DNA of 64,000 nucleotides from the sequence record OQ708376.1, one strand, 5' to 3'. Position numbers and translations under genes: made by a program. The notes below the pieces were generated by a model that worked only from the letters and a program-made list of their open reading frames with translations, did no database searches and was not told the DNA's origin. Shown piece by piece: positions 22,462-47,785 of the stretch. The number at the start of each line of letters is the position of its first letter. Positions within the stretch are counted from its first letter, which is position 1.

Positions 22462-25400
22462 ATGTATATCGATGCTTATATGGAACGTAAACGTACTGGT
22501 GATATTCTTCATGTAGTTGAACGTAAGAATGGTAAACGTATTCTACGCGAATTAGAACCAGTATATGAATATTATGTTGAATCCCCACAAGGAACACATA
22601 AAACTGTTTATGGTACAATGGCTAAACATTTTGAGTTTCAAACTCAAGCTCAAATGAATAAAAGTGTAGAGAAACACAAAAGTGAAGGTCTACGTATTTT
22701 TGAAAGTGATTGTAACATTACATTTAAAACATTAGCCAAAGAATATATGGGAAAAGGCTCACCCGATTTGAACATCGTGTTCTTCGATATCGAGACTGAT
22801 TTCCATAAGAAATTTGGTTATGCTCCACCATCAGACCCGTTTAACCGAGTAACCGCTATTTCTCTATATCAATCATGGACTGGAAAGGATTATGTACTTA
22901 CTTTACCACCTGCTGATATGGAAATTTATGAAGCACAAGATATTGTTCGCCAACTAAATGAAGAAACAAACGATCCTAACAGTACTGTAATTTTATATAC
23001 AGACGAAAAGGAAATGTTTATGGAATTCTTTAGTTTAATTGATGATTCTGATGTTATTTCAGGATGGAATAGTGAATTCTTTGATATTCCATATATGATC
23101 AATCGAACTAAAAAAATCTTCAATGAAGCAACAACTGCTCGTTGGTGTTTATGGAATAAAAAACCAAATTCACGTGAAGCAGACAACTTTGGTAAAACTG
23201 TTCAAACATATGATCTGGTAGGTCGCGTCCATCTTGATTATTTGGCTTTGTATAAGAAACATGCTGGTCAAGTTGAACAATCTTATAAACTAGATTATAT
23301 TGCTGAAAAAGTAACTAAAGAAAATAAAGTATCATATGAAGGTTCATTGGATAAACTTTACAGAGAGGATTACATTACTTTCTTGCGTTATTCTAAACAG
23401 GATAGTATTCTTCTTAAAAAGATTGATGCTAAATGTGACTATATCAACCTACACAATCGACTTGCACACAAAGAATGTGTACTTATCAGCACAACAATGG
23501 GTTCAGTAGCACTAATCGACACTGCTATTATCAACTTAGCACATACTCGTGGTGAAGTTGTTTTTAACAAAGCACCTAAAGATGATCTTGAGTTTGATCC
23601 AGAAATGGAATATTATGGTGAAGATGGTGAAGATGAAGATGAGAAAATTAGTGCAAAAGCAGCAGGTGCATGGGTACAAGATCCAGTACTAGGACTTGTA
23701 AGTGACCTTGGGTGTACTGACTTTAACTCTCTTTACCCTACAGTTCTACGCACTTTGGGTATGAGTACTGAATGTATTCTTGGTCAATTACGTCAAGATT
23801 ACACCGATGCGTATCTTGCAGCTAAAATCCAAGAACAGAAGAACAAATCTAAATCTAAATCATTTGAACCAGATTGGACTGCGGCATGGCATGGTTTATT
23901 TGCTGCTGTTGAATTTACAATGGTTCATGAAAAGTCAGAAGAAACATTGATTGTTGATTTAGAAGATGGGAGTTCTTTTAAAGCAACGGGCAAAGAGCTA
24001 TATGATATTATTTTTGCAGAAGATAGTACTATTGTACTTAGTGCAAACGGAACACTTTTTGATAAGTCTAAGTCTGGTGTAATTCCTGACATTCTAACTC
24101 AATGGTATTCTGAACGTAAAGCACAGCAAAAAATGGTCATTGACTACAAACATATGTATACTGATGGTTGGGAGTTTAATGGCTATGAAAAAGTCGAACC
24201 ACTACTATCAAACTATACCCCTGGTACAATGTTTAGAACTAATATTCATGATAATGATCCTGTATACTTACTTCGTAAAGAAATTGGTAAAGGACAATGG
24301 GATGAAGTTGCTAAGTTGATTGTAGAAAATGGTTTAGTACTAAAAGATGGTCGTATTTTCTGTCCTAAAGAAGAAAAAGATTACTTCAAACAACGTAGTG
24401 CTTTCTGGAAACAGAACCAACAGATTCGTAAGATTCTTCTAAACAGTCTATATGGTGCACTATTGAACAAAGGTTCTCGTTTCTTTGACAAACGTTTAGG
24501 TCAATCCGTAACATTAACTGGACGTTCTATGACCAAACATATGGCAAGTCGTATCAATGAGATTACTACTGGTGTATATAATCACCAAGGTGGTTCAGTA
24601 ATTTATGGTGATACTGACTCAGTTTACTTTAGTGTAACGCATTATCTGAAAGAACAAGGTATTCCATATAATCTATCTAAAGAAGAGATTGTTGATATGT
24701 ATATTAAAATTGGTGAAGAAGTTGGTGAATCTTTCCCATCATTTATGCATGAGATGTTCAACACTGGTATTGAAAAAGGTAAGATTGTTGGTGCAGACCT
24801 TGAGATGGTTGGTTCACGTGGCCTATTCTTGAAGAAAAAACGTTATGCAATTCTGAAGTACTGGGAAGATGGGTTCCGTAAAGATATTGATGGTAAACCA
24901 GGTGAAATCAAAGCGATGGGTCTTGAAATTAAACGCTCAGACACGCCAAAATACATCCAGAACTTCCTAGAAGAGACTCTAATCGCATTACTGGTAGGTG
25001 AGAGTGAACAGCAGCTAAAACAGCGTGTACGTGAGTTTAAGGACGTATTTAAGGATATGCCTGTACATGAAAAAGGTTCACCAAAAACTGTAAAAAACTA
25101 CACTAATTTAGAGGCTGAATATCAGCTAACTGGTAAGTGTAAAGTTGGTCACGTTCTTGCTGGTATCCAATGGAACCGTCTACGTGAAGTTTATGATGAT
25201 AAATCTGTTCCAGAAGTAACAGATGGAACAAAAGTAATTGTCTGTAACTTAAAAGATAATCCTATGGGAATTAAAGCTGTTGGATATCCAATTGACTGTG
25301 TTGAGTATCTACCAGAATGGTTCTTGGAACTACCATTTGATACTGAAAAAATGGAAGAGATTGTTCTAACTAAAAAATTAGAGAATATTTTTGGTATTTT

Positions 25401-25467
25401 GGATATGGATATTGGTATTCATGAAAAAAGTACTGCGTCAGTAAACAATGGATTCTTCACTTGGTAA
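22462..25467 (+). CDS. gp43: DNA polymerase family B with 3'-5' exonuclease
   Basis: FFDIETD, GWNSEFFDIPY, DFNSLYP, KILLNSLYG, YGDTDS, KKRY. Confidence 0.97.
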   Translation: MYIDAYMERKRTGDILHVVERKNGKRILRELEPVYEYYVESPQGTHKTVYGTMAKHFEFQTQAQMNKSVEKHKSEGLRIFESDCNITFKTLAKEYMGKGSPDLNIVFFDIETDFHKKFGYAPPSDPFNRVTAISLYQSWTGKDYVLTLPPADMEIYEAQDIVRQLNEETNDPNSTVILYTDEKEMFMEFFSLIDDSDVISGWNSEFFDIPYMINRTKKIFNEATTARWCLWNKKPNSREADNFGKTVQTYDLVGRVHLDYLALYKKHAGQVEQSYKLDYIAEKVTKENKVSYEGSLDKLYREDYITFLRYSKQDSILLKKIDAKCDYINLHNRLAHKECVLISTTMGSVALIDTAIINLAHTRGEVVFNKAPKDDLEFDPEMEYYGEDGEDEDEKISAKAAGAWVQDPVLGLVSDLGCTDFNSLYPTVLRTLGMSTECILGQLRQDYTDAYLAAKIQEQKNKSKSKSFEPDWTAAWHGLFAAVEFTMVHEKSEETLIVDLEDGSSFKATGKELYDIIFAEDSTIVLSANGTLFDKSKSGVIPDILTQWYSERKAQQKMVIDYKHMYTDGWEFNGYEKVEPLLSNYTPGTMFRTNIHDNDPVYLLRKEIGKGQWDEVAKLIVENGLVLKDGRIFCPKEEKDYFKQRSAFWKQNQQIRKILLNSLYGALLNKGSRFFDKRLGQSVTLTGRSMTKHMASRINEITTGVYNHQGGSVIYGDTDSVYFSVTHYLKEQGIPYNLSKEEIVDMYIKIGEEVGESFPSFMHEMFNTGIEKGKIVGADLEMVGSRGLFLKKKRYAILKYWEDGFRKDIDGKPGEIKAMGLEIKRSDTPKYIQNFLEETLIALLVGESEQQLKQRVREFKDVFKDMPVHEKGSPKTVKNYTNLEAEYQLTGKCKVGHVLAGIQWNRLREVYDDKSVPEVTDGTKVIVCNLKDNPMGIKAVGYPIDCVEYLPEWFLELPFDTEKMEEIVLTKKLENIFGILDMDIGIHEKSTASVNNGFFTW

Positions 25468-38521: not shown

Positions 38522-40006
38522 ATGAAAACTTGTAAGTTAACCTTATTGGATGAGGTGAATTGTAAATTTGAGGGACTTGATCCCTCAATTAGACAAAAGA
38601 TGATTCGTGCAACTGAATATGTGTTGCCATATGCAAAGTTCACACCAGCAGGACGTATTGGACGTTGGGATGGTAAAGTTCAGTTTATGAATTTAGGCGG
38701 GACAACTTATTATCATATGTTAGATAAGTTATTGCCTATTCTTGATGAAGCTAAGATTGACATTGAATTAGTAGATCATAGGGTAGATTATGGATTTAAA
38801 TTTGACCCTATTGATGAAGATATTTTTAGTGATGTTGTATTCGGTGCAGGACACCACATGGAAGGTAAATCCATAAAACTGCGTGAACATCAAGTTAATG
38901 CGGTTAATGCATGTTTGGCTAATCCACACGGACTACTATTGGCAGCTACTGGTGCAGGTAAAACTCTCATTACTGCTGCATTGTCAAAGAAAGTGCAAGA
39001 GTATGGACGTTCTGTTATAATAGTACCAAGTACTGATTTAGTACAACAAACATATGATGACTATATTATGTGTGGCTTGGACACTGGTATGTTCTATGGT
39101 TCACAAAAAGATTTCGGTCACCAACATACAATCACGACTTGGCAATCTTTTAACTCTCTTTGGAAGAAAACCAAAAAAGGTGAAATAGAATTAACAGAAC
39201 AAGACGTGAATGATTTTATCGATGGAGTAGTTTGTGTTATCGTTGATGAGTGTCAAGGTGCAGGCGGTGACGCATTAGTTCAAGTACTTTCTAAAGTTAT
39301 GAATAACGTACCATTACGTTGGGGTCTTACTGGAACAATTCCTAAAGATCCGGTAGTTGCCGCGAAAATCAAATGTAATGTTGGTGATGTTATATTTAAA
39401 ATAACTGCAAAGGAATTACAAGATAAACAAATACTAAGTACATGTAATGTGAATTGCATCAAACTAAAAAGTAGTATGAAGTTTGCATCATATGCTGAAG
39501 AGTTGAAATACTTAGTAACTGACAGAGATAGGATGGCATATGTAGCGTCATTGATATCTGCGTTATCTGAATCAGGAAACACTTTAGTTTTAGTAGATAG
39601 ACTTGAAGCAGGTGAGTTGCTATGTGAATTTTTAGGCATTCCCAAATCAGAATTCGTTCGTGGAGAAACTAAAAAGAAAGATCGAGAATCATCTTATGGT
39701 GAAATTCGTTGGGCTGATAATAAAATACTTATTGCGACATACGGCGTTGCCAGTACTGGTATTAGTATTTCAAGGTTATATAATGTAGTATTGATTGAGC
39801 CAGGAAAAAGTTTTGTAAGAACTATACAGTCAATTGGACGTGGATTACGCCGAGCAGAAGATAAAGATCACGTAGAAATATATGATATTAGTGGTTCTAA
39901 TAAGTATAGTGCAAAGCATTTACGAGAACGTTTAGCTTACTATAAGGAAGCACAATATCCTCATAGTATTATAGATGTTAAAGATTGGGAAAACACAGCG
40001 GGATAA
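38522..40006 (+). CDS. uvsW: SF2 DNA helicase
   Basis: ATGAGKT, IVDECQ, GLTGT, STGISI, QSIGRGLR. Confidence 0.92.
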   Translation: MKTCKLTLLDEVNCKFEGLDPSIRQKMIRATEYVLPYAKFTPAGRIGRWDGKVQFMNLGGTTYYHMLDKLLPILDEAKIDIELVDHRVDYGFKFDPIDEDIFSDVVFGAGHHMEGKSIKLREHQVNAVNACLANPHGLLLAATGAGKTLITAALSKKVQEYGRSVIIVPSTDLVQQTYDDYIMCGLDTGMFYGSQKDFGHQHTITTWQSFNSLWKKTKKGEIELTEQDVNDFIDGVVCVIVDECQGAGGDALVQVLSKVMNNVPLRWGLTGTIPKDPVVAAKIKCNVGDVIFKITAKELQDKQILSTCNVNCIKLKSSMKFASYAEELKYLVTDRDRMAYVASLISALSESGNTLVLVDRLEAGELLCEFLGIPKSEFVRGETKKKDRESSYGEIRWADNKILIATYGVASTGISISRLYNVVLIEPGKSFVRTIQSIGRGLRRAEDKDHVEIYDISGSNKYSAKHLRERLAYYKEAQYPHSIIDVKDWENTAG

Positions 40007-41001: not shown

Positions 41002-41847
41002 GTGTTTGATTTCAGTGATATTAAAAATAAGTCGGTCGATGATGATGAAAAACCAACACAGCATTCTTTTTCTATTGCTGAATTTCTAAAACACATTGAC
41101 CGTGCTGATTATAAGTACTATAATGACATGACCGAAAAAGAACGAAAAGAGTTTACTCCATATACTGTTTTGCGATGGGTAAGCTCTTTAGATGATTCGT
41201 TACAAGTAACCTACCCTAGTAGTAAAGTTGAAAGTGTATTTGGAAAATGGAAATCTGGTGGTAAAGAAGCACTGACTGAACTAGTTACTGAATTAAAGTC
41301 TTCAGGGACAAATGTTTCATCAGTAACTAAGTACTGTCATAGTGATTATGATTGGCGTATTAAATTTGCAGTCCAATCAAAAGATGACGCACAAAAATTA
41401 ATATCCTCAATGGTCGAATTTGGCGTATCAGGTTCAGAAATTGTTTCATTAGTAGATACTGAAGTTGTCAAATACCAACTTATTATGCTAAATGATATGG
41501 TTAATGATGGATTTTGGGATATGAAAGAACATCCAGAATTAGTATATCAGCTTATGTGTTCAGTCCATGATATGATTGGTGGACAAGAAATGCCACGTAA
41601 CTGGTTAAACTTTTCTAAGAATTTCAAAAAGGCAAATAACGAATTATTTGAGTTAATTAAAAGCTCACAACCTGATACTATATCTACTCAAATGAATGAA
41701 GATGAGTACAAAATTGTTCTATTGCAGTATGATAAAAAAACATTTGAGACATTTCTTGACAATAATGGTTTTCAAGATAATGAAAAGAAATCTATGATGA
41801 AATTGTTTAAAGAAGAATGTAAAAAATATGGCAAAGAAATCAAGTAA
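41002..41847 (+). CDS. Probable clamp-loader small subunit, gp62-like, with central insertion
   Basis: KEFTPY.VLRWVS and LN..VN..FW....HPELVYQL.C motifs. Confidence 0.5.
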   Translation: MFDFSDIKNKSVDDDEKPTQHSFSIAEFLKHIDRADYKYYNDMTEKERKEFTPYTVLRWVSSLDDSLQVTYPSSKVESVFGKWKSGGKEALTELVTELKSSGTNVSSVTKYCHSDYDWRIKFAVQSKDDAQKLISSMVEFGVSGSEIVSLVDTEVVKYQLIMLNDMVNDGFWDMKEHPELVYQLMCSVHDMIGGQEMPRNWLNFSKNFKKANNELFELIKSSQPDTISTQMNEDEYKIVLLQYDKKTFETFLDNNGFQDNEKKSMMKLFKEECKKYGKEIK

Positions 41848-42538
41848 TAAAGTATATACCTGTAGATTTTGTGATCGTGAATTTAAACGTGAAGAAACTG
41901 TAAACACACATAAATGTATAAAACGTGACCGATACGAAGACCGCCAAAGCCGCCAGATGATGGAGGCTTTTCGTATATATATGCAATTTATGGAATTGAA
42001 TAAGTTCCCATTTAAAAAAGGCGTAGAGCCTTTTATTGCTTTTATAAAGTCAAAGTACTTTAATGATTTTTATAGTTTTGCCGAATACTATTTGAATAAT
42101 AGAGATATTATTAATGTGGACGAGTTTGTAAAGTACTTGATTATCAATAACAAACCAATCACGGAATGGAGTACATATAAAGCAAAAGATGAATGGATAT
42201 TAAAAACAATTCGTGCCGAGCACCCAAAAGAAGCAATTGCAAGAAGTGTTATCTCACTGGTTGAATGGGCTGAAAATTTGAATGTACAATGGAATACTTT
42301 CTTTGAAAATGTAAGTTCTGCCCGTGCAATTGCATGGATTGAGAGTGGTAAAATTTCACCTTGGATTATCTGGCTTGCTCCTAAAAAAAGTACTAATAAG
42401 TTTTTTAAAAAACTATCAAACTCAGAAATTGAATATATACTTAAATACATCGATCCAAGTTATTTTGAAATCAAAACTATAAAATACAAAAAGGATTGTG
42501 ATGAAATTAAGATTATGCTATGTGAGGCAGGATTATGA
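41828..42538 (+). CDS. Hypothetical protein with N-terminal zinc finger
   Basis: YTCRFCDREF......HKC. Confidence 0.7.
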   Translation: MAKKSSNKVYTCRFCDREFKREETVNTHKCIKRDRYEDRQSRQMMEAFRIYMQFMELNKFPFKKGVEPFIAFIKSKYFNDFYSFAEYYLNNRDIINVDEFVKYLIINNKPITEWSTYKAKDEWILKTIRAEHPKEAIARSVISLVEWAENLNVQWNTFFENVSSARAIAWIESGKISPWIIWLAPKKSTNKFFKKLSNSEIEYILKYIDPSYFEIKTIKYKKDCDEIKIMLCEAGL

Positions 42539-42864
42539 ATGGAAAAAGTATATATAATAAAATACCAGAAGGGTATGTACCTGTACCTAAAGAACAAAAA
42601 TCAAAACAAATATCTCTACTTAGACAAGGATCTATTACTGAAATAACTTTAGATGGTAAAACATTTCAAGTTCATGATCCTGCTCGTATTGAAAAAATTA
42701 TTTCTTTGGTAGAAAGACACGAAGAACGCTTTTTCAGTTTAAGTCAAGAATTGGCAAAGACAAAACAAAATTGTAGATTATTAGAGAATCAAATATCAAC
42801 TTTGACTAATACAGTTAAACAGTTACAGGAGCAAATAAAAAATGCAGGATTCGACCGATTCTAA
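42535..42864 (+). CDS. Hypothetical coiled-coil protein
   Basis: Heptad-rich C-terminal half. Confidence 0.65.
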   Translation: MNGKSIYNKIPEGYVPVPKEQKSKQISLLRQGSITEITLDGKTFQVHDPARIEKIISLVERHEERFFSLSQELAKTKQNCRLLENQISTLTNTVKQLQEQIKNAGFDRF

Positions 42865-43480
42865 ACATTATAGAAAAGCCCGAACTGATATTGACATTGA
42901 CTTCAAGGATAGTAAAAGCGTAATCGCTAAACTTCCATGTGTGCGAAGTACTGAAAAAATTACGGAGGATGGTTTAATCCCCCATAATAGTGGTGTTCAT
43001 TTTGATAATATACCTATTGATCCAATCACTGGATTGGCAAGTATACAATATAAAGAAGCTGAAAGGTTAGGGTATCAAAAAGTTGATATTCTTTCACAGT
43101 CAGCTTACATGTATGTTCGTGATAGAGAGCATTTAAAAGAACTAATGAATCAGGAACCAAATTGGGATCTATTGTTAGAACCCGAAATTGTAGAACATCT
43201 ATCGCAAATTAAAAAACATGTAACTTTATTAAATGTATGGAAGCCTAAATCTATAGACGAACTAGCAATGTTTATTGCAATGATTCGCCCAGGAAAAAGG
43301 CAGTGCCAAAGTATGAACACATGGGACGAAGTTAAAGCTACCATATGGGATTATAGTACTATAGGCACTGACCAAGCAGGAAATAAATTACGATATTTCA
43401 AAAAGCCACATGCTTACGCATATAGCTTAATGATTGTTGTACAACTAAATGCTTTAGTTGAACATCTTACTTCTTCTTAA
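42842..43480 (+). CDS. Miniature DNA polymerase III alpha (DnaE)-like protein
   Basis: DIDIDF, HNSGV, GYQKVDIL, IAMIRPG and FKKPHAYAY appear in DnaE order. Confidence 0.8.
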   Translation: MQDSTDSKHYRKARTDIDIDFKDSKSVIAKLPCVRSTEKITEDGLIPHNSGVHFDNIPIDPITGLASIQYKEAERLGYQKVDILSQSAYMYVRDREHLKELMNQEPNWDLLLEPEIVEHLSQIKKHVTLLNVWKPKSIDELAMFIAMIRPGKRQCQSMNTWDEVKATIWDYSTIGTDQAGNKLRYFKKPHAYAYSLMIVVQLNALVEHLTSS

Positions 43481-43820
43481 GAGCCACATTACGACGCTTG
43501 ATGCGTTTCTGTGGCAAATTGCTTAAAGAAACTACTGGACCACATACGAAATTCACCGACGGTGTATCGAATCTCTGTGTGTACGGTTCAAATTTCTCCA
43601 TCTCTTCTTGAAAGAATAGACAAACTGGAATGGTTCTATTACTTTGCCACCACCAATCGTGTGCTATACCTAACAATTCGTCTTGCATTGAATCATCCAT
43701 ATCATCGAAACAGTAAAGAGTTGTATACTGTTTGCTTTTGATTTTGATGATACCAACAAACGTTTTACCATCATACTGGATTACAGTAATGAATGGTGGA
43801 ATAGTGTTATATTGATTCAT
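43467..43820 (-). CDS. Conserved hypothetical protein
   Basis: 117-aa ORF with SD; divergent late-type promoter upstream. Confidence 0.65.
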   Translation of the reverse strand: MNQYNTIPPFITVIQYDGKTFVGIIKIKSKQYTTLYCFDDMDDSMQDELLGIAHDWWWQSNRTIPVCLFFQEEMEKFEPYTQRFDTPSVNFVCGPVVSLSNLPQKRIKRRNVALKKK

Positions 43821-43877
43821 ATTAGTTCCATAAATATTAGTATAAATTTATACCTATTATTTATGGAAGGAAAAACT

Positions 43878-44855
43878 ATGGCTCATCACGGCGTGTTTAT
43901 GTACCCTTATAATCAGGAAGTATCATTGGGCAATTTTAATATGCCATATAGCAATGAAAAACTAACTATATATAGAGGGGCAAATAATAATTTATCTTTT
44001 ACTGTTCACAACGCTGATGGAAAATATACTTTATTGAAAGATAATGAATATCTTACATTTATGATTTTTGATGCACGAAATAATACTAAACTATTTGATG
44101 TTGTATTAGAAAAACAAGAACCCAGTTGGTTATCAGAAAGTGGACAAGCAAGACAAACATTAGGAAATAAAAAGAAAGTATATTATGGATGTATTGTTCC
44201 AGCAGGAGTTATTCAAGATACCAGTCCTGGTTCAAAATATAGATGGAGCATTACTAAAGTAACAATGGATGGTTCACTTATAGAACCAACACAATATCTA
44301 TATACAGGGATGAACTTTGAGGCATCAGCAGAGCTAATAATTTCAGACCAAGCAGCACCTGTATTTGTCCCCAGTACTGAAATATCAGTTAATAAAAATC
44401 CAGCATGGACAACTATAAAGCGTTTATATCATGAACCAATTGGAAATGGTATGATTGGTGAATATGATATTCTCGCATCAACTCCACTACCAGCACAAAT
44501 GCAGTTTGGATTAGTAGATGGATTAAGTAGTATTGCAATCTATTTTGATAAATTTATTGGTAGAATACAGCTACAAGGGTGCTTGTGTAACAACGTACCT
44601 AATGATAATGAAAACTATAAATGGTTTATTATTAAATTAGATGGAAAGGATTATATTGAAAATGGAATTGATTCAGAAGGTTTTCCAAAAGAACTTGACG
44701 GAATACAAGCATTTAATTTTAAAGGAAATTATATGTGGTTACGTTTGGTGGTTGCTATTCATCCCAAAATTGTTCCAGTACCATATGACTATGCTGCTGT
44801 CCGAAAAGTGTATGACCCTTTCCTAACAGTACCTAAAATTTTGATACGTAGATGA
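43878..44855 (+). CDS. Probable virion structural protein (beta-rich)
   Basis: GGAAGG SD before ATG 43878; IYRGANNNLSFTVHNADGK; late promoters upstream. Confidence 0.5.
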   Translation: MAHHGVFMYPYNQEVSLGNFNMPYSNEKLTIYRGANNNLSFTVHNADGKYTLLKDNEYLTFMIFDARNNTKLFDVVLEKQEPSWLSESGQARQTLGNKKKVYYGCIVPAGVIQDTSPGSKYRWSITKVTMDGSLIEPTQYLYTGMNFEASAELIISDQAAPVFVPSTEISVNKNPAWTTIKRLYHEPIGNGMIGEYDILASTPLPAQMQFGLVDGLSSIAIYFDKFIGRIQLQGCLCNNVPNDNENYKWFIIKLDGKDYIENGIDSEGFPKELDGIQAFNFKGNYMWLRLVVAIHPKIVPVPYDYAAVRKVYDPFLTVPKILIRR

Positions 44856-44910: not shown

Positions 44911-45966
44911 ATGAACGCTGTACAAAACATAATGGCACAAATTATGAATGATCCAGTACCTGCGATTGGTACATGGTCACAACACAACTGTCCAGCTTGT
45001 GTGTTCAGAGGACATTCAAGGCCGGATACAAAGCACCGTGGTAATCATATGTTCAATGCAGATGGTTCCGTTTCATATAACTGCTTTAACTGTAGTTTAA
45101 AAACTGGTTGGCAACCAGGAAAATATATGAGCAAAGATATGGAGTCTTTGCTCATTTCTTTTGGTGCACAAGATAAAGAAATAGAATTAGTTAAGTTTTA
45201 TATTAAAGAAATGGTTGACAGCGGTGATTTTGCTGCACAAGAAACTGTTGCATCAAAATTGTATGACCGAGTAACAGTACGTGATTTGCCATCAAATGCA
45301 AAAACATTTTGGGAATGGGCTTCTTTACCTGAAGATAAAATTCCACAAGAATTTATAAGTGTTTTGCATAATGTCAATGAAAGAAACCCATATCTGTTAG
45401 ACTTAGAATTATATTGGTCACCTAATAAAGAACATAAAATGTATGACAGATTTATTATTCCATATTTCATGAATGGTAAAATTATTGGTTATACTGCACG
45501 ACATAAATTAAAAGATCCTGGAAGTACATACAGGTTCATAAATCAAGTAAGTACTAATATACTATATAACTATGATTTATTAAAAGATGAACGAATAAAA
45601 ACAATTTTAGTATGTGAGGGTCCGTTAGACGCAGCATTAATGGGTGGTGTATCTGCTAATAACTTTAAATTATCAAACGTACAGATTGATGTATTAAAAG
45701 ATGCACAGCAAAAAGGTAAAAAAATAGTTATTGTTCCAGATAGAGATAAAGATGGATTAATAACTATAGACCAAGCACTTGAAAATGGATTCAGTGTTTC
45801 CTTCCCAGACTTTGGTGCTGTAAGAGAAGGTAGTACAATACGTCATATCAAAGACTTTGAAGAAGCTTGTGCACGATTTGGTAGGTTATTTTGTTTACAA
45901 TTAATACATGATAGTATAGTAGATGAGCCATTTTATATTAAAGCTCAAACGGATAAATGGATGTAA
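44911..45966 (+). CDS. gp61: DNA primase (zinc finger + TOPRIM)
   Basis: CPAC...YNCFNC; VCEGPLDA; VPDRDKDG. Confidence 0.88.
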   Translation: MNAVQNIMAQIMNDPVPAIGTWSQHNCPACVFRGHSRPDTKHRGNHMFNADGSVSYNCFNCSLKTGWQPGKYMSKDMESLLISFGAQDKEIELVKFYIKEMVDSGDFAAQETVASKLYDRVTVRDLPSNAKTFWEWASLPEDKIPQEFISVLHNVNERNPYLLDLELYWSPNKEHKMYDRFIIPYFMNGKIIGYTARHKLKDPGSTYRFINQVSTNILYNYDLLKDERIKTILVCEGPLDAALMGGVSANNFKLSNVQIDVLKDAQQKGKKIVIVPDRDKDGLITIDQALENGFSVSFPDFGAVREGSTIRHIKDFEEACARFGRLFCLQLIHDSIVDEPFYIKAQTDKWM

Positions 45967-45988: not shown

Positions 45989-47509
45989 ATGATTCAAAGC
46001 ACAGTGGATGTGAAACAATATGGGATTAATGCACAACAATACTTATTATCTCAGATTTTCAGTAATCCTGATTTATATGTACGTTGTAAAAATATCCTTA
46101 AACCAGAATATTTTGATAAAACATTTCATGAAAGTATTCAATACGTGCATGATTATGCTGCAAAATATAGTTCATCACCTACTTTGAAAGATATTGAAGT
46201 TAAAGGTGGTTATCAATACGATCAATATGAAGTTCAAGAATTACATAAACAATCAGTACTTGATACCTGTGGTGAATTTTGTCGCCATAAAGCATTAGCT
46301 TTAGCCGTTGAAAAAGGAATGGAACTTGTCCATCAGAAAAAATATGGTGGAATCGAAGAACTAATCCGAGAAGCAATGTTGGTAACGGTACAGAATGAGT
46401 TAGGTTTGGATATTTTTGAAAACCCTGAAGATACAATCCGCTCACTCAGTACAATGCAAGGATCATTTAAGAGTGGTTGGGAAACTCTTGATTACAAACT
46501 TTTCGGTGGATTTGGGCGTAGAGAGTTAGAGATCTTTGCTGCTGCATCAGGTGGTGGTAAATCAGTAGTACTGCAAAATTTAGCAGTTAACTTTGCGAAA
46601 GCTGGAATGAATGGTGCATACATTTCACTTGAACTAGCTGAAGAGTTGGTTGCTGTTCGTATCTATGGTATGATGACTGAATCAAAACTCAGTAACGTAA
46701 AAAATGAAGCTGAAAAGATTGGATTTGCTGTTAAAGTTGAAGGTAAAAACAGTGGTATGTTGCGTATTAAACGCTTACCTGAATCTGTAACAACCACAGA
46801 CGATATTGAAAGTTATCTACGTGAATTACAAATTAAGATGGAAATCAAACTTGATTATGTATGCGTGGACTATTTGGATCTATTAACTTCTAATCGTCTT
46901 GGACCAAATGATAAATCCAATACATTTACTAAAGATAAATTTGTATCAGAAGAATTACGTGCTCTTGCATCCAAAATGGATTTGACTGTTTTCACTGCAT
47001 CTCAGTTTAACCGTAGTGGTATGGACGAAGATAAGAAAAGTCAAAGTCAGATTGCTGGTGGTATTTCAAAAATTTATACTGCTGATAACGTAATTTATAT
47101 TGAAGCAAAAAAAGAAACTGGCGAACTATGGTTTGATTTCCAAAAAACACGTAACAGTAGTGCAGTAGGTTCCCGTTTGCGTATGTCATATGATATTGAT
47201 TCATTGAGAGTTCTTGACCACGCAACTACAGTACAACAAATGGAAACCGAAGGTAATGGATTCCGTCACAGCGGTGTTTCTAAGATTGGTGGAGGGAACA
47301 TGGCGTTACCACCCAGCACTATGCAAACATTACGTCATTCGCTTTCTGGTGCAGCTAAATCACCATCTGTGCAACCTGACAATACAGTAACACTAAATAC
47401 TGATAGTGCTCCTAACTCTACGACACAAAACGAAATACAGAATCCACAGACACATGCTGGTACTGATCGTGTTCATGCAATGAAGCAATGGTTAAATCAA
47501 AGGAAATGA
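45989..47509 (+). CDS. gp41: Replicative DnaB-like helicase
   Basis: AASGGGKS, ISLEL, VDYLDL, TASQFNR, KTRNS. Confidence 0.92.
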   Translation: MIQSTVDVKQYGINAQQYLLSQIFSNPDLYVRCKNILKPEYFDKTFHESIQYVHDYAAKYSSSPTLKDIEVKGGYQYDQYEVQELHKQSVLDTCGEFCRHKALALAVEKGMELVHQKKYGGIEELIREAMLVTVQNELGLDIFENPEDTIRSLSTMQGSFKSGWETLDYKLFGGFGRRELEIFAAASGGGKSVVLQNLAVNFAKAGMNGAYISLELAEELVAVRIYGMMTESKLSNVKNEAEKIGFAVKVEGKNSGMLRIKRLPESVTTTDDIESYLRELQIKMEIKLDYVCVDYLDLLTSNRLGPNDKSNTFTKDKFVSEELRALASKMDLTVFTASQFNRSGMDEDKKSQSQIAGGISKIYTADNVIYIEAKKETGELWFDFQKTRNSSAVGSRLRMSYDIDSLRVLDHATTVQQMETEGNGFRHSGVSKIGGGNMALPPSTMQTLRHSLSGAAKSPSVQPDNTVTLNTDSAPNSTTQNEIQNPQTHAGTDRVHAMKQWLNQRK

Positions 47510-47512
47510 TAA

Positions 47513-47785
47513 ATGTCTAGTAAATCCAATAAAAAGAATCTACTTGATAGTATAGTTGACTATACGCCAGAGAAAGATACATTACAGAGTTTTAGTAATC
47601 GTGCCGACCACGCAATAAACTCTGTGATTCATTTATTGGAGAGCATTGAAGATGAGTTTAACCAAACTGATGCTGAAGATTTAAAAAAACGCTTATTTCT
47701 AAGTATAAAAAACCGAGATTATAAAAAGTTTCAAAAAGGGTTAGAGAATATAGCACTTGATGAAAAACGTAATAAAGGAAATTAA
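47513..47785 (+). CDS. Hypothetical protein (probable virion)
   Basis: ORF at the start of the late cluster. Confidence 0.6.
   Translation: MSSKSNKKNLLDSIVDYTPEKDTLQSFSNRADHAINSVIHLLESIEDEFNQTDAEDLKKRLFLSIKNRDYKKFQKGLENIALDEKRNKGN

Follow-up and report, generated by a model that had tools for sequence, protein, structure and literature searches.

Why does a phage with a family B replicase of its own also encode what looks like a piece of the bacterial replicase? The question is raised by a 64,000-nucleotide stretch of sequence record OQ708376.1, the whole of which we call the window. The window codes for a 1,001-residue family B DNA polymerase, as an earlier note made from the sequence had stated, and, within a block of replication genes, for a 212-residue protein bearing motifs of DnaE, the α subunit of bacterial DNA polymerase III (Pol III α). 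The earlier note took this protein for a minimal family C nucleotidyltransferase, perhaps with primer extension or DNA-end or base modification as its task, or for one subunit of an enzyme divided among it and the adjacent zinc-finger and coiled-coil proteins. Between positions 40000 and 48000 the window is 100% identical to phages CRJP21, slurp01, G17 and Sharanji, and its DNA is that of an Asteriusvirus-type (Rak2-like) jumbo phage of Escherichia coli. The open reading frame (ORF) begins with ATG, with AGGAG 11 nt 5′ of the start; promoter and terminator scans around the gene gave results at chance level only. We document here the homology of this protein to DnaE, its split from a partner half, the conservation of its residues, its natural fusions and its genomic context. 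Taken together, the protein is probably the C-terminal unit (C-unit) of a two-piece minimal family C polymerase, accessory and distributive, found in a large clade of jumbo phages.

The motifs of the C-unit are DIDIDF (residues 16–21), HNSGV (48–52), GYQKVDIL (77–84), PKSIDEL..IAMIRPG (135–151) and YFKKPHAYAY (185–194). They follow the order of their counterparts in E. coli DnaE, which are PDFDVDF (401), HAGGV (511), KFDFLG (553), FRPGP (638) and NKSHSAAY (757–764), just as the earlier note had read them. The catalytic carboxylates D16, D18 and D82 align to D401, D403 and D555 of E. coli DnaE (Table 1). Two aspartates of DIDIDF had been called catalytic; this is right, and the pair is the first two, the third (D20) being the equivalent of D405. 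Conservation was counted over 269 members of the C-unit family, down to ~36% identity. Both D16 and D18 are kept in 249/249 homologues and D20 in 245/249, and D82 and K80 are each kept in 260/261. The strand that contains H48 (251/252) and G51 (249/252) is similarly constant, as are R149 (241/245) and P150 (241/244) in the fingers. Slightly more variation is seen in the last motif (K187, 225/236; H190, 232/236; Y194, 222/235), which opens the final helix of the chain. The earlier note had made its reading depend on conserved aspartates, and on this point the reading stands.

The statistical case for homology was built from several searches. With the C-unit alone, Pfam returned DNA_pol3_finger (PF17657) at E 0.045 over residues 129–162, below its cut-off. 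A phmmer search of the PDB found nothing relevant, a profile of 27 C-unit sequences (hmmsearch) had no PDB match at E ≤ 1, and hhalign of the C-unit profile alone with E. coli DnaE gave E 0.039. When natural fusions (described below) were included in the profile, hhalign matched E. coli DnaE 263–642 with a probability of 96.5% and E 8.8e-10, in an alignment continuous across the junction. An AlphaFold (AF2) model of the C-unit had a predicted local distance difference test (pLDDT) score of 93 and a predicted template-modelling (pTM) score of 0.80. Comparison of this model with the PDB using Foldseek bore out the likeness to the DnaE palm for which the earlier note had suggested looking: the best 12 matches are all Pol III α (Thermus, Mycobacterium tuberculosis and E. 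coli), and below them there is only noise. Among the viral structures of BFVD, the ~25 best matches of the model are phage DnaE proteins. Thus, the homology becomes significant only with structure prediction and the natural fusions, detection from sequence only having largely failed. By its predicted structure the C-unit is DnaE-like, and we take the structure to settle that question.

The C-unit belongs to a large family. It matches phrog_11778, labelled ‘DNA polymerase’, at E 2.1e-108, with residues 9–211 on profile positions 1–197 of 197; the earlier note had allowed that relatives might already carry an annotation. A large protein collection contains 785 homologues, and an exhaustive profile search yielded 509 cluster representatives at E ≤ 1e-3. 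Relatives are present in 96 phage records, those of PA5oct, RsoM2USA, Xoo-sp13 and one Vibrio jumbo phage among them, and in at least 592 IMG/VR stretches.

The same structural reading was reached independently by Iyer, Anantharaman, Krishnan, Burroughs and Aravind (2021, Viruses 13:63, PMC7824862), so that the finding is already known computationally. These authors described a phage-specific split minimal Pol III α in group 2.2 jumbo phages, consisting of an N-terminal nucleoside triphosphate-binding protein and a C-terminal Mg2+/template-binding protein, the genes for which lie far apart in genomes that also encode a family B polymerase. The window protein is a member of this family (PHROG 11778 for the C-unit and PHROG 11127 for its partner) and does not differ from it in kind. 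What is new here is the residue map, the conservation counts, the predicted structures and the fixed break point, together with the independent re-fusions, the near-adjacent arrangements, the link between a fusion and a primase-type replicase, and the two constant neighbours.

What the C-unit lacks is as informative as what it contains. Ahead of the DxD strand its chain has just 15 residues, where DnaE has ~130 palm residues including the GRGS motif (361–364). The half with this GS motif was found neither in the C-unit nor in any other ORF of the window (motif scan; best E 0.39 with a hidden Markov model of the partner), and E. coli DnaE used as a query matched no further window ORF. It is instead encoded as a separate protein, the N-unit. 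In Sharanji this is gp285, a protein of 172 residues that carries GLGRGSS, ends ...EFLKW, and matches both PF07733 (E 1.9e-9, above the cut-off) and phrog_11127. In Sharanji and G17, phages identical to the window over 8 kb, 30.3 kb separate the C-unit gene from the N-unit gene downstream of it. In the numbering of the window the N-unit gene would lie at ~73.8–74.3 kb, ~9.8 kb past the right end. The proposal of a minimal family C nucleotidyltransferase thus appears sound as regards a reduced family C protein with conserved carboxylates, and fails as regards an enzyme complete on one chain, the GRGS half being on another. A pseudogene or frameshift was also considered as the origin of this arrangement and dismissed, given the 30 kb between the genes and the retention of each in hundreds of genomes.

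In Sharanji, gp285 (L001:13715-16279, that is, Sharanji 123715-126279) is four genes away from gp281, a clamp-loader-like ‘DnaX’, and a GroES-like gene, and it adjoins genes similar to topoisomerase II/gyrase. Both halves of the mini-polymerase are therefore located in replication neighbourhoods.

The position of the split is fixed across the family, within one loop at DnaE residues ~395–400. The N-unit chain ends 29–31 residues past GRGS in 112/119 homologues, and the C-unit chain starts 1–19 residues before DxD. The two units also occur in nearly equal numbers of records in each host genus of the phage collection (Escherichia 34/34, Pseudomonas 11/11, Salmonella 8/8 and Erwinia 8/8). No N-unit gene was present within 10 kb of the C-unit gene in 80 IMG/VR loci; in RsoM2USA, the two genes are 4 kb apart.

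In two metagenomic proteins, P0186 (375 residues) and P0256 (336 residues), the N-unit is followed directly by the C-unit. PF07733 matches both (E 4.8e-16 and E 1.1e-8, respectively), in each case beginning in the half with the GS motif and reaching or passing the DxD of the C-unit half. P0186 is modelled as a contiguous family C palm (pLDDT 87.9, pTM 0.86). Foldseek comparison of this model gave 16 PDB matches at E ≤ 1e-3, all of them family C including PolC (best 9e-9), and the next match was at E ≥ 4, which is noise. In a tree of C-unit domains, P0186 and P0256 each group with stand-alone C-units, but in separate clades (supports of 0.98 and 0.95), and this placement suggests two independent re-fusions. 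P0168, a stand-alone C-unit that is the sister of P0186, has its halves close together and also in N-to-C order: on its contig (L090:3-1636; ENA contig BRZ_ML NODE_52194), the 3′ end of an N-unit gene is located ~0.9 kb upstream on the same strand, with two tiny ORFs and a homologue of the zinc-finger protein at 41828 in between. That the units fuse in N-to-C order is a good indication that they function as a single enzyme. Directly ahead of the gene for P0256, and sharing its last 4 nt with it, is a gene for a 552-residue protein that combines a helix-turn-helix with a primase-type ‘Replicase’ domain (PF03090). This locus (L008:1516-4181) is on an 8-kb contig, JGI Ga0669126_0033275, which also has a PG_binding_1 gene and may be a small phage or plasmid that uses the mini-enzyme.

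In one further metagenomic protein, P0264 (233 residues), the first ~110 residues of a C-unit are continued by the C-terminal portion of a pseudouridine synthase (PF00849, E 1e-8), a combination that probably arose through chimeric assembly or a frameshift.

Most of the DnaE architecture is absent from both halves. The earlier note listed PHP, most of the thumb and fingers, the clamp-binding region and the OB domain as missing, and Pfam, alignment and chain lengths agree. No PHP domain was detected by Pfam in either half, and the alignment to DnaE begins at residue 263. D20 and H48 are separated by 27 residues, compared with 105 between D405 and H511 in E. coli DnaE, and the model has a short helix and a hairpin there; the thumb has therefore been deleted. 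The fingers span ~130 residues versus ~350 in DnaE, and RPG and K-x-H..Y are the only finger motifs retained. Finally, Pfam detected no β-clamp-binding/helix-hairpin-helix (HhH), OB or τ-binding domain in the C-unit, the chain of which stops 18 residues past Y194, the equivalent of Y764.

We propose that the two proteins work together as follows. The C-unit would supply the metal ligands D16, D18 and D82, the lysine K80 and a short fingers subdomain with RPG and K-x-H-x3-Y. The N-unit would supply the other half of the palm, including GRGS, the nucleotide-phosphate-binding motif. The halves would then pair non-covalently into a single active site, with ~384 residues in total. As the break falls inside the Pol-β-like catalytic core, neither half should be active alone, and the enzyme would be an obligate non-covalent heterodimer. 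On the strength of the fold, the natural fusions and the strict co-occurrence of the two units, we think it quite likely that this heterodimer forms and is catalytically active. That the catalytic and finger motifs hardly vary speaks for an enzyme that is active and reads a template. That every part serving processivity or proofreading has been lost speaks for a distributive polymerase in an accessory role, next to the family B replicase. We thus expect the assembled pair to synthesize DNA on a template, distributively and without proofreading, in aid of the family B replicase, most likely by elongating primers from the primase whose gene is close by, or by filling gaps. Which task it has in the replisome is a matter of speculation, and any specific assignment to primer extension or gap filling is doubtful. 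The boldest version, in which the pair is an active enzyme with the smallest family C core (~300 homologous residues) and serves as the primer-extension polymerase between primase and family B replicase, we hold to be unlikely. In that version, the zinc-finger protein at 41828 and the convergent protein at 43467, with its WWW motif and basic tail, might supply the DNA-holding functions that have been lost.

Several points weigh against a split, accessory polymerase. We know of no thumb-less family C polymerase that is active, and stable binding of a primer-template is therefore left unexplained. The residue corresponding to DnaE R390 is not kept in the N-unit, in which a Glu aligns with it. 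Single-protein sequence statistics against DnaE are weak, and the residue mapping of H48–G51 depends on a low-confidence hhalign alignment. The fused homologue is only a proxy for the complex of N-unit and C-unit, and a gene order shared by members of a single viral clade may be due to common descent and not to function. The literature searches found no experimental study of a split minimal Pol III α, and the earlier note appears correct in stating that no function was established, even though a computational description exists (PMC7824862). The omics paper on PA5oct does not mention the C-unit gene.

Four other explanations were weighed against these data. The one that survives best accepts the assembled mini-enzyme and makes of it a nucleotidyltransferase that performs no templated DNA synthesis, acting in DNA or RNA end tailing, in DNA or base modification, or in the making of a small nucleotide product, tasks for which other enzymes with the Pol-β fold are models. 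Its catalytic core has the Pol-β-like nucleotidyltransferase fold, as is established (Iyer et al. 2021, PMC7824862), and the thumb, HhH/clamp-binding region and OB domain with which Pol III α holds duplex DNA are all gone. Furthermore, a full family B replicase, exonuclease domain included, is already encoded by the phage. However, the RPG and K-x-H-x3-Y finger motifs that are near-invariant in the C-unit are specific to family C, and the structural matches are all to replicative family C enzymes and none to other Pol-β-fold transferases. The gene also resides in a replication block by primase and helicase genes, and P0256 is coupled to a primase-type replicase. An enzyme without templated synthesis is, on this evidence, distinctly unlikely.

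It is highly unlikely that the protein is a catalytically dead relic, retained as a replisome scaffold or as a decoy for partners of host Pol III. The extreme loss of domains and the missing R390 would fit such a relic. By contrast, the catalytic aspartates, the lysine and GRGS are near-invariant over hundreds of divergent homologues, which is unexpected for a dead enzyme, and the regions that bind host β, τ and ε (PHP and the C-terminal domains) are exactly those that have been lost.

The 212-residue chain might also be self-sufficient, alone or together with the adjacent zinc-finger and coiled-coil proteins. All three catalytic carboxylates are on this chain, and the zinc-finger ORF is found directly upstream, stop and start overlapping, in all 68 related loci in which it could be scored. 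The GRGS strand-helix of the same catalytic sheet is missing from the chain and from every ORF of the window, and this element forms a dedicated, co-occurring protein that is fused to the C-unit in two lineages. The neighbours have no similarity to DnaE, and the coiled-coil ORF occurs in just 6 of the 80 loci. We therefore give self-sufficiency very little weight. The earlier note's idea of split subunits was right in principle and wrong in the partners that it named. A post-translational joining of the halves by a split intein, for which the trans-splicing split DnaE of cyanobacteria is an established precedent, likewise encoded by two distant genes, has next to no probability, as the phage break near DnaE 395–400 differs from the cyanobacterial one, the halves have no intein sequences, and an N-unit that ends 29–31 residues past GRGS (all aligned to DnaE) and a C-unit that starts 1–19 residues before DxD leave no room for them. 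Without inteins, association of the phage halves must be non-covalent, as the two-piece polymerase proposed above would have it.

The C-unit gene is part of a conserved gene order (Table 1). Neighbours were counted in those loci with enough flank among 80 diverse related IMG/VR loci, except that the coiled-coil ORF was counted over all 80. The order is SF2 (superfamily 2) helicase, 40500, 41002, 41828, C-unit, 43467 (on the opposite strand), 43812, primase and DnaB. The replisome setting noted earlier, with primase and helicase genes close by, is conserved across these loci. The window also codes for a gp32-type single-stranded DNA-binding protein, a UvsX/RecA-type recombinase and a FEN-type nuclease. 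A DnaQ-like exonuclease encoded in the replication block could proofread in trans for a polymerase that has no exonuclease.

Table 1. Coordinates of the C-unit, its motifs and neighbouring genes in the window. Fractions give loci with the feature over loci scored.
Feature	Position	Strand	Basis and remarks
C-terminal unit (C-unit) of a putative split minimal Pol III α, 212 aa; metal-binding palm part and trimmed finger subdomain	42842..43480	+	phrog_11778, AF2, Foldseek, hhalign
D16-I17-D18-I19-D20 = DnaE D401-F402-D403-V404-D405; D16 and D18 catalytic	42887..42901	+	alignment register, conservation
H48-N-S-G51 = DnaE H511-A-G-G514; palm strand after the DnaE thumb	42983..42994	+	weak hhalign placement; model hairpin 34–53
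K80-V81-D82 = DnaE K553-F554-D555; D82 is the third catalytic carboxylate	43079..43087	+	hhalign, conservation
R149-P150-G151-K152 = DnaE finger motif R639-P640-G641-P642	43286..43297	+	hhalign, conservation, Pfam DNA_pol3_finger
K187-K188-P-H190-A-Y-A-Y194 = DnaE N757-K758-S-H760-S-A-A-Y764	43400..43423	+	hhalign on DnaE 650–800, conservation
Zinc-finger protein (N-terminal CCHC/C2H2-type), 236 aa	41828..42538	+	upstream of C-unit in 68/68 loci; also in L005–L007 and L089–L091
117-aa protein, convergent, overlapping the last 14 nt of the C-unit gene	43467..43820	-	74/77 loci; beside the fused form in L004, also in L089; phrog_11637
Coiled-coil protein, 109 aa, overlapping the C-unit gene start by 23 nt	42535..42864	+	phrog_14909 ‘virion structural protein’; 6/80 loci
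Family B DNA polymerase, 1001 aa, presumed main replicase	22462..25467	+	PF03104 (E 3.8e-23), PF00136 (E 1.3e-21)
DNA primase	44911..45966	+	SHEFM2K annotation (phrog 47), no Pfam hit; downstream in 48/51 loci
DnaB-type replicative helicase	45989..47509	+	PF03796 (E 3.4e-17); downstream in 49/51 loci
DnaQ-like exonuclease (RNase_T), 272 aa	37688..38506	+	PF00929; beside the SF2 helicase in the replication block

Two neighbours of the C-unit gene are nearly constant. The protein at 41828 belongs to a family with invariant C12, C15, H28 and C30. Its profile matches only C2H2 zinc fingers in the PDB (residues 5–28, E 1.5e-7), and the finger, of eukaryote-like C2H2 type, is followed by ~200 residues without known relatives. 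A role as an accessory subunit is possible. The convergent protein at 43467 has near-invariant W56, W57 and W58, N61, R62 and P65, and a basic tail with K105, R106, K108 and R109; no relative of it was found in Pfam or, by profile search, in the PDB. Neither is a displaced piece of the polymerase: the idea that neighbours represent lost DnaE domains was rejected, because hhalign of the 41002, 41828 and 43467 families with E. coli DnaE gave probabilities of <1%. The coiled-coil ORF at 42535 is absent from PA5oct and RsoM2USA as judged by blastp.

Three plus-strand ORFs inside the replication module (42535-42864, 43812-44855 and 47513-47785) are labelled ‘virion structural protein’ in relatives, and the PA5oct homologue of 43812-44855 was seen in virions by electrospray ionization tandem mass spectrometry (ESI-MS/MS). 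The interleaving of packaged proteins with primase, helicase and polymerase genes is odd.

Comparison with better-known enzymes places the phage protein within family C. Bacterial Pol III α/DnaE (E. coli, Thermus aquaticus and M. tuberculosis DnaE1) and PolC have the same Pol-β-like palm, with DxD, the third Asp and the K553 equivalent. They share with the phage enzyme the H-x-x-G strand and the RPG and K-S-H..Y finger motifs, in the same order, and they are its sole structural matches. They differ from it in size, the phage enzyme having ~384 residues in two chains and DnaE ~1160 in one, and the genome of the phage uses a family B replicase.

Two further enzymes offer functional analogies only. 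Bacillus subtilis DnaE (DnaE3) extends RNA primers before hand-off to PolC; it is of full length, with PHP, thumb and clamp binding. By analogy, the phage pair may be a family C secondary polymerase that works with primase, the C-unit gene being two genes away from the primase–DnaB pair. Pol X of African swine fever virus, a minimal family X enzyme of 174 residues, demonstrates that a very small, distributive gap-filling polymerase works. Like the proposed phage enzyme, it is viral, has a Pol-β-fold core and has shed DNA-binding subdomains; it differs in being a single chain of family X, homologous to the phage enzyme no further than the fold of the catalytic core.

Since both the family and its split nature have been published, the present analysis adds little as a discovery, and its value is in pointing to the missing experiment. 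Such work is practicable, as E. coli K-12 MG1655 is a host of Sharanji. An active pair would define the minimal catalytic core of family C and would mean that the fold of the bacterial replicase works in the absence of a thumb, of PHP and of contacts with the clamp. The phage replisome would then be a natural one that mixes family B and family C enzymes. Were the primer-extension reading true, a bacterial-type enzyme would hold a Pol-α-like job within a replisome of archaeo-eukaryotic type. The C-unit gene is situated in the conserved replication core of a large and environmentally widespread phage clade, and an active enzyme there would bear on the origin of the unrelated bacterial and archaeo-eukaryotic replicases, as argued by Iyer et al. 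(2021, PMC7824862).

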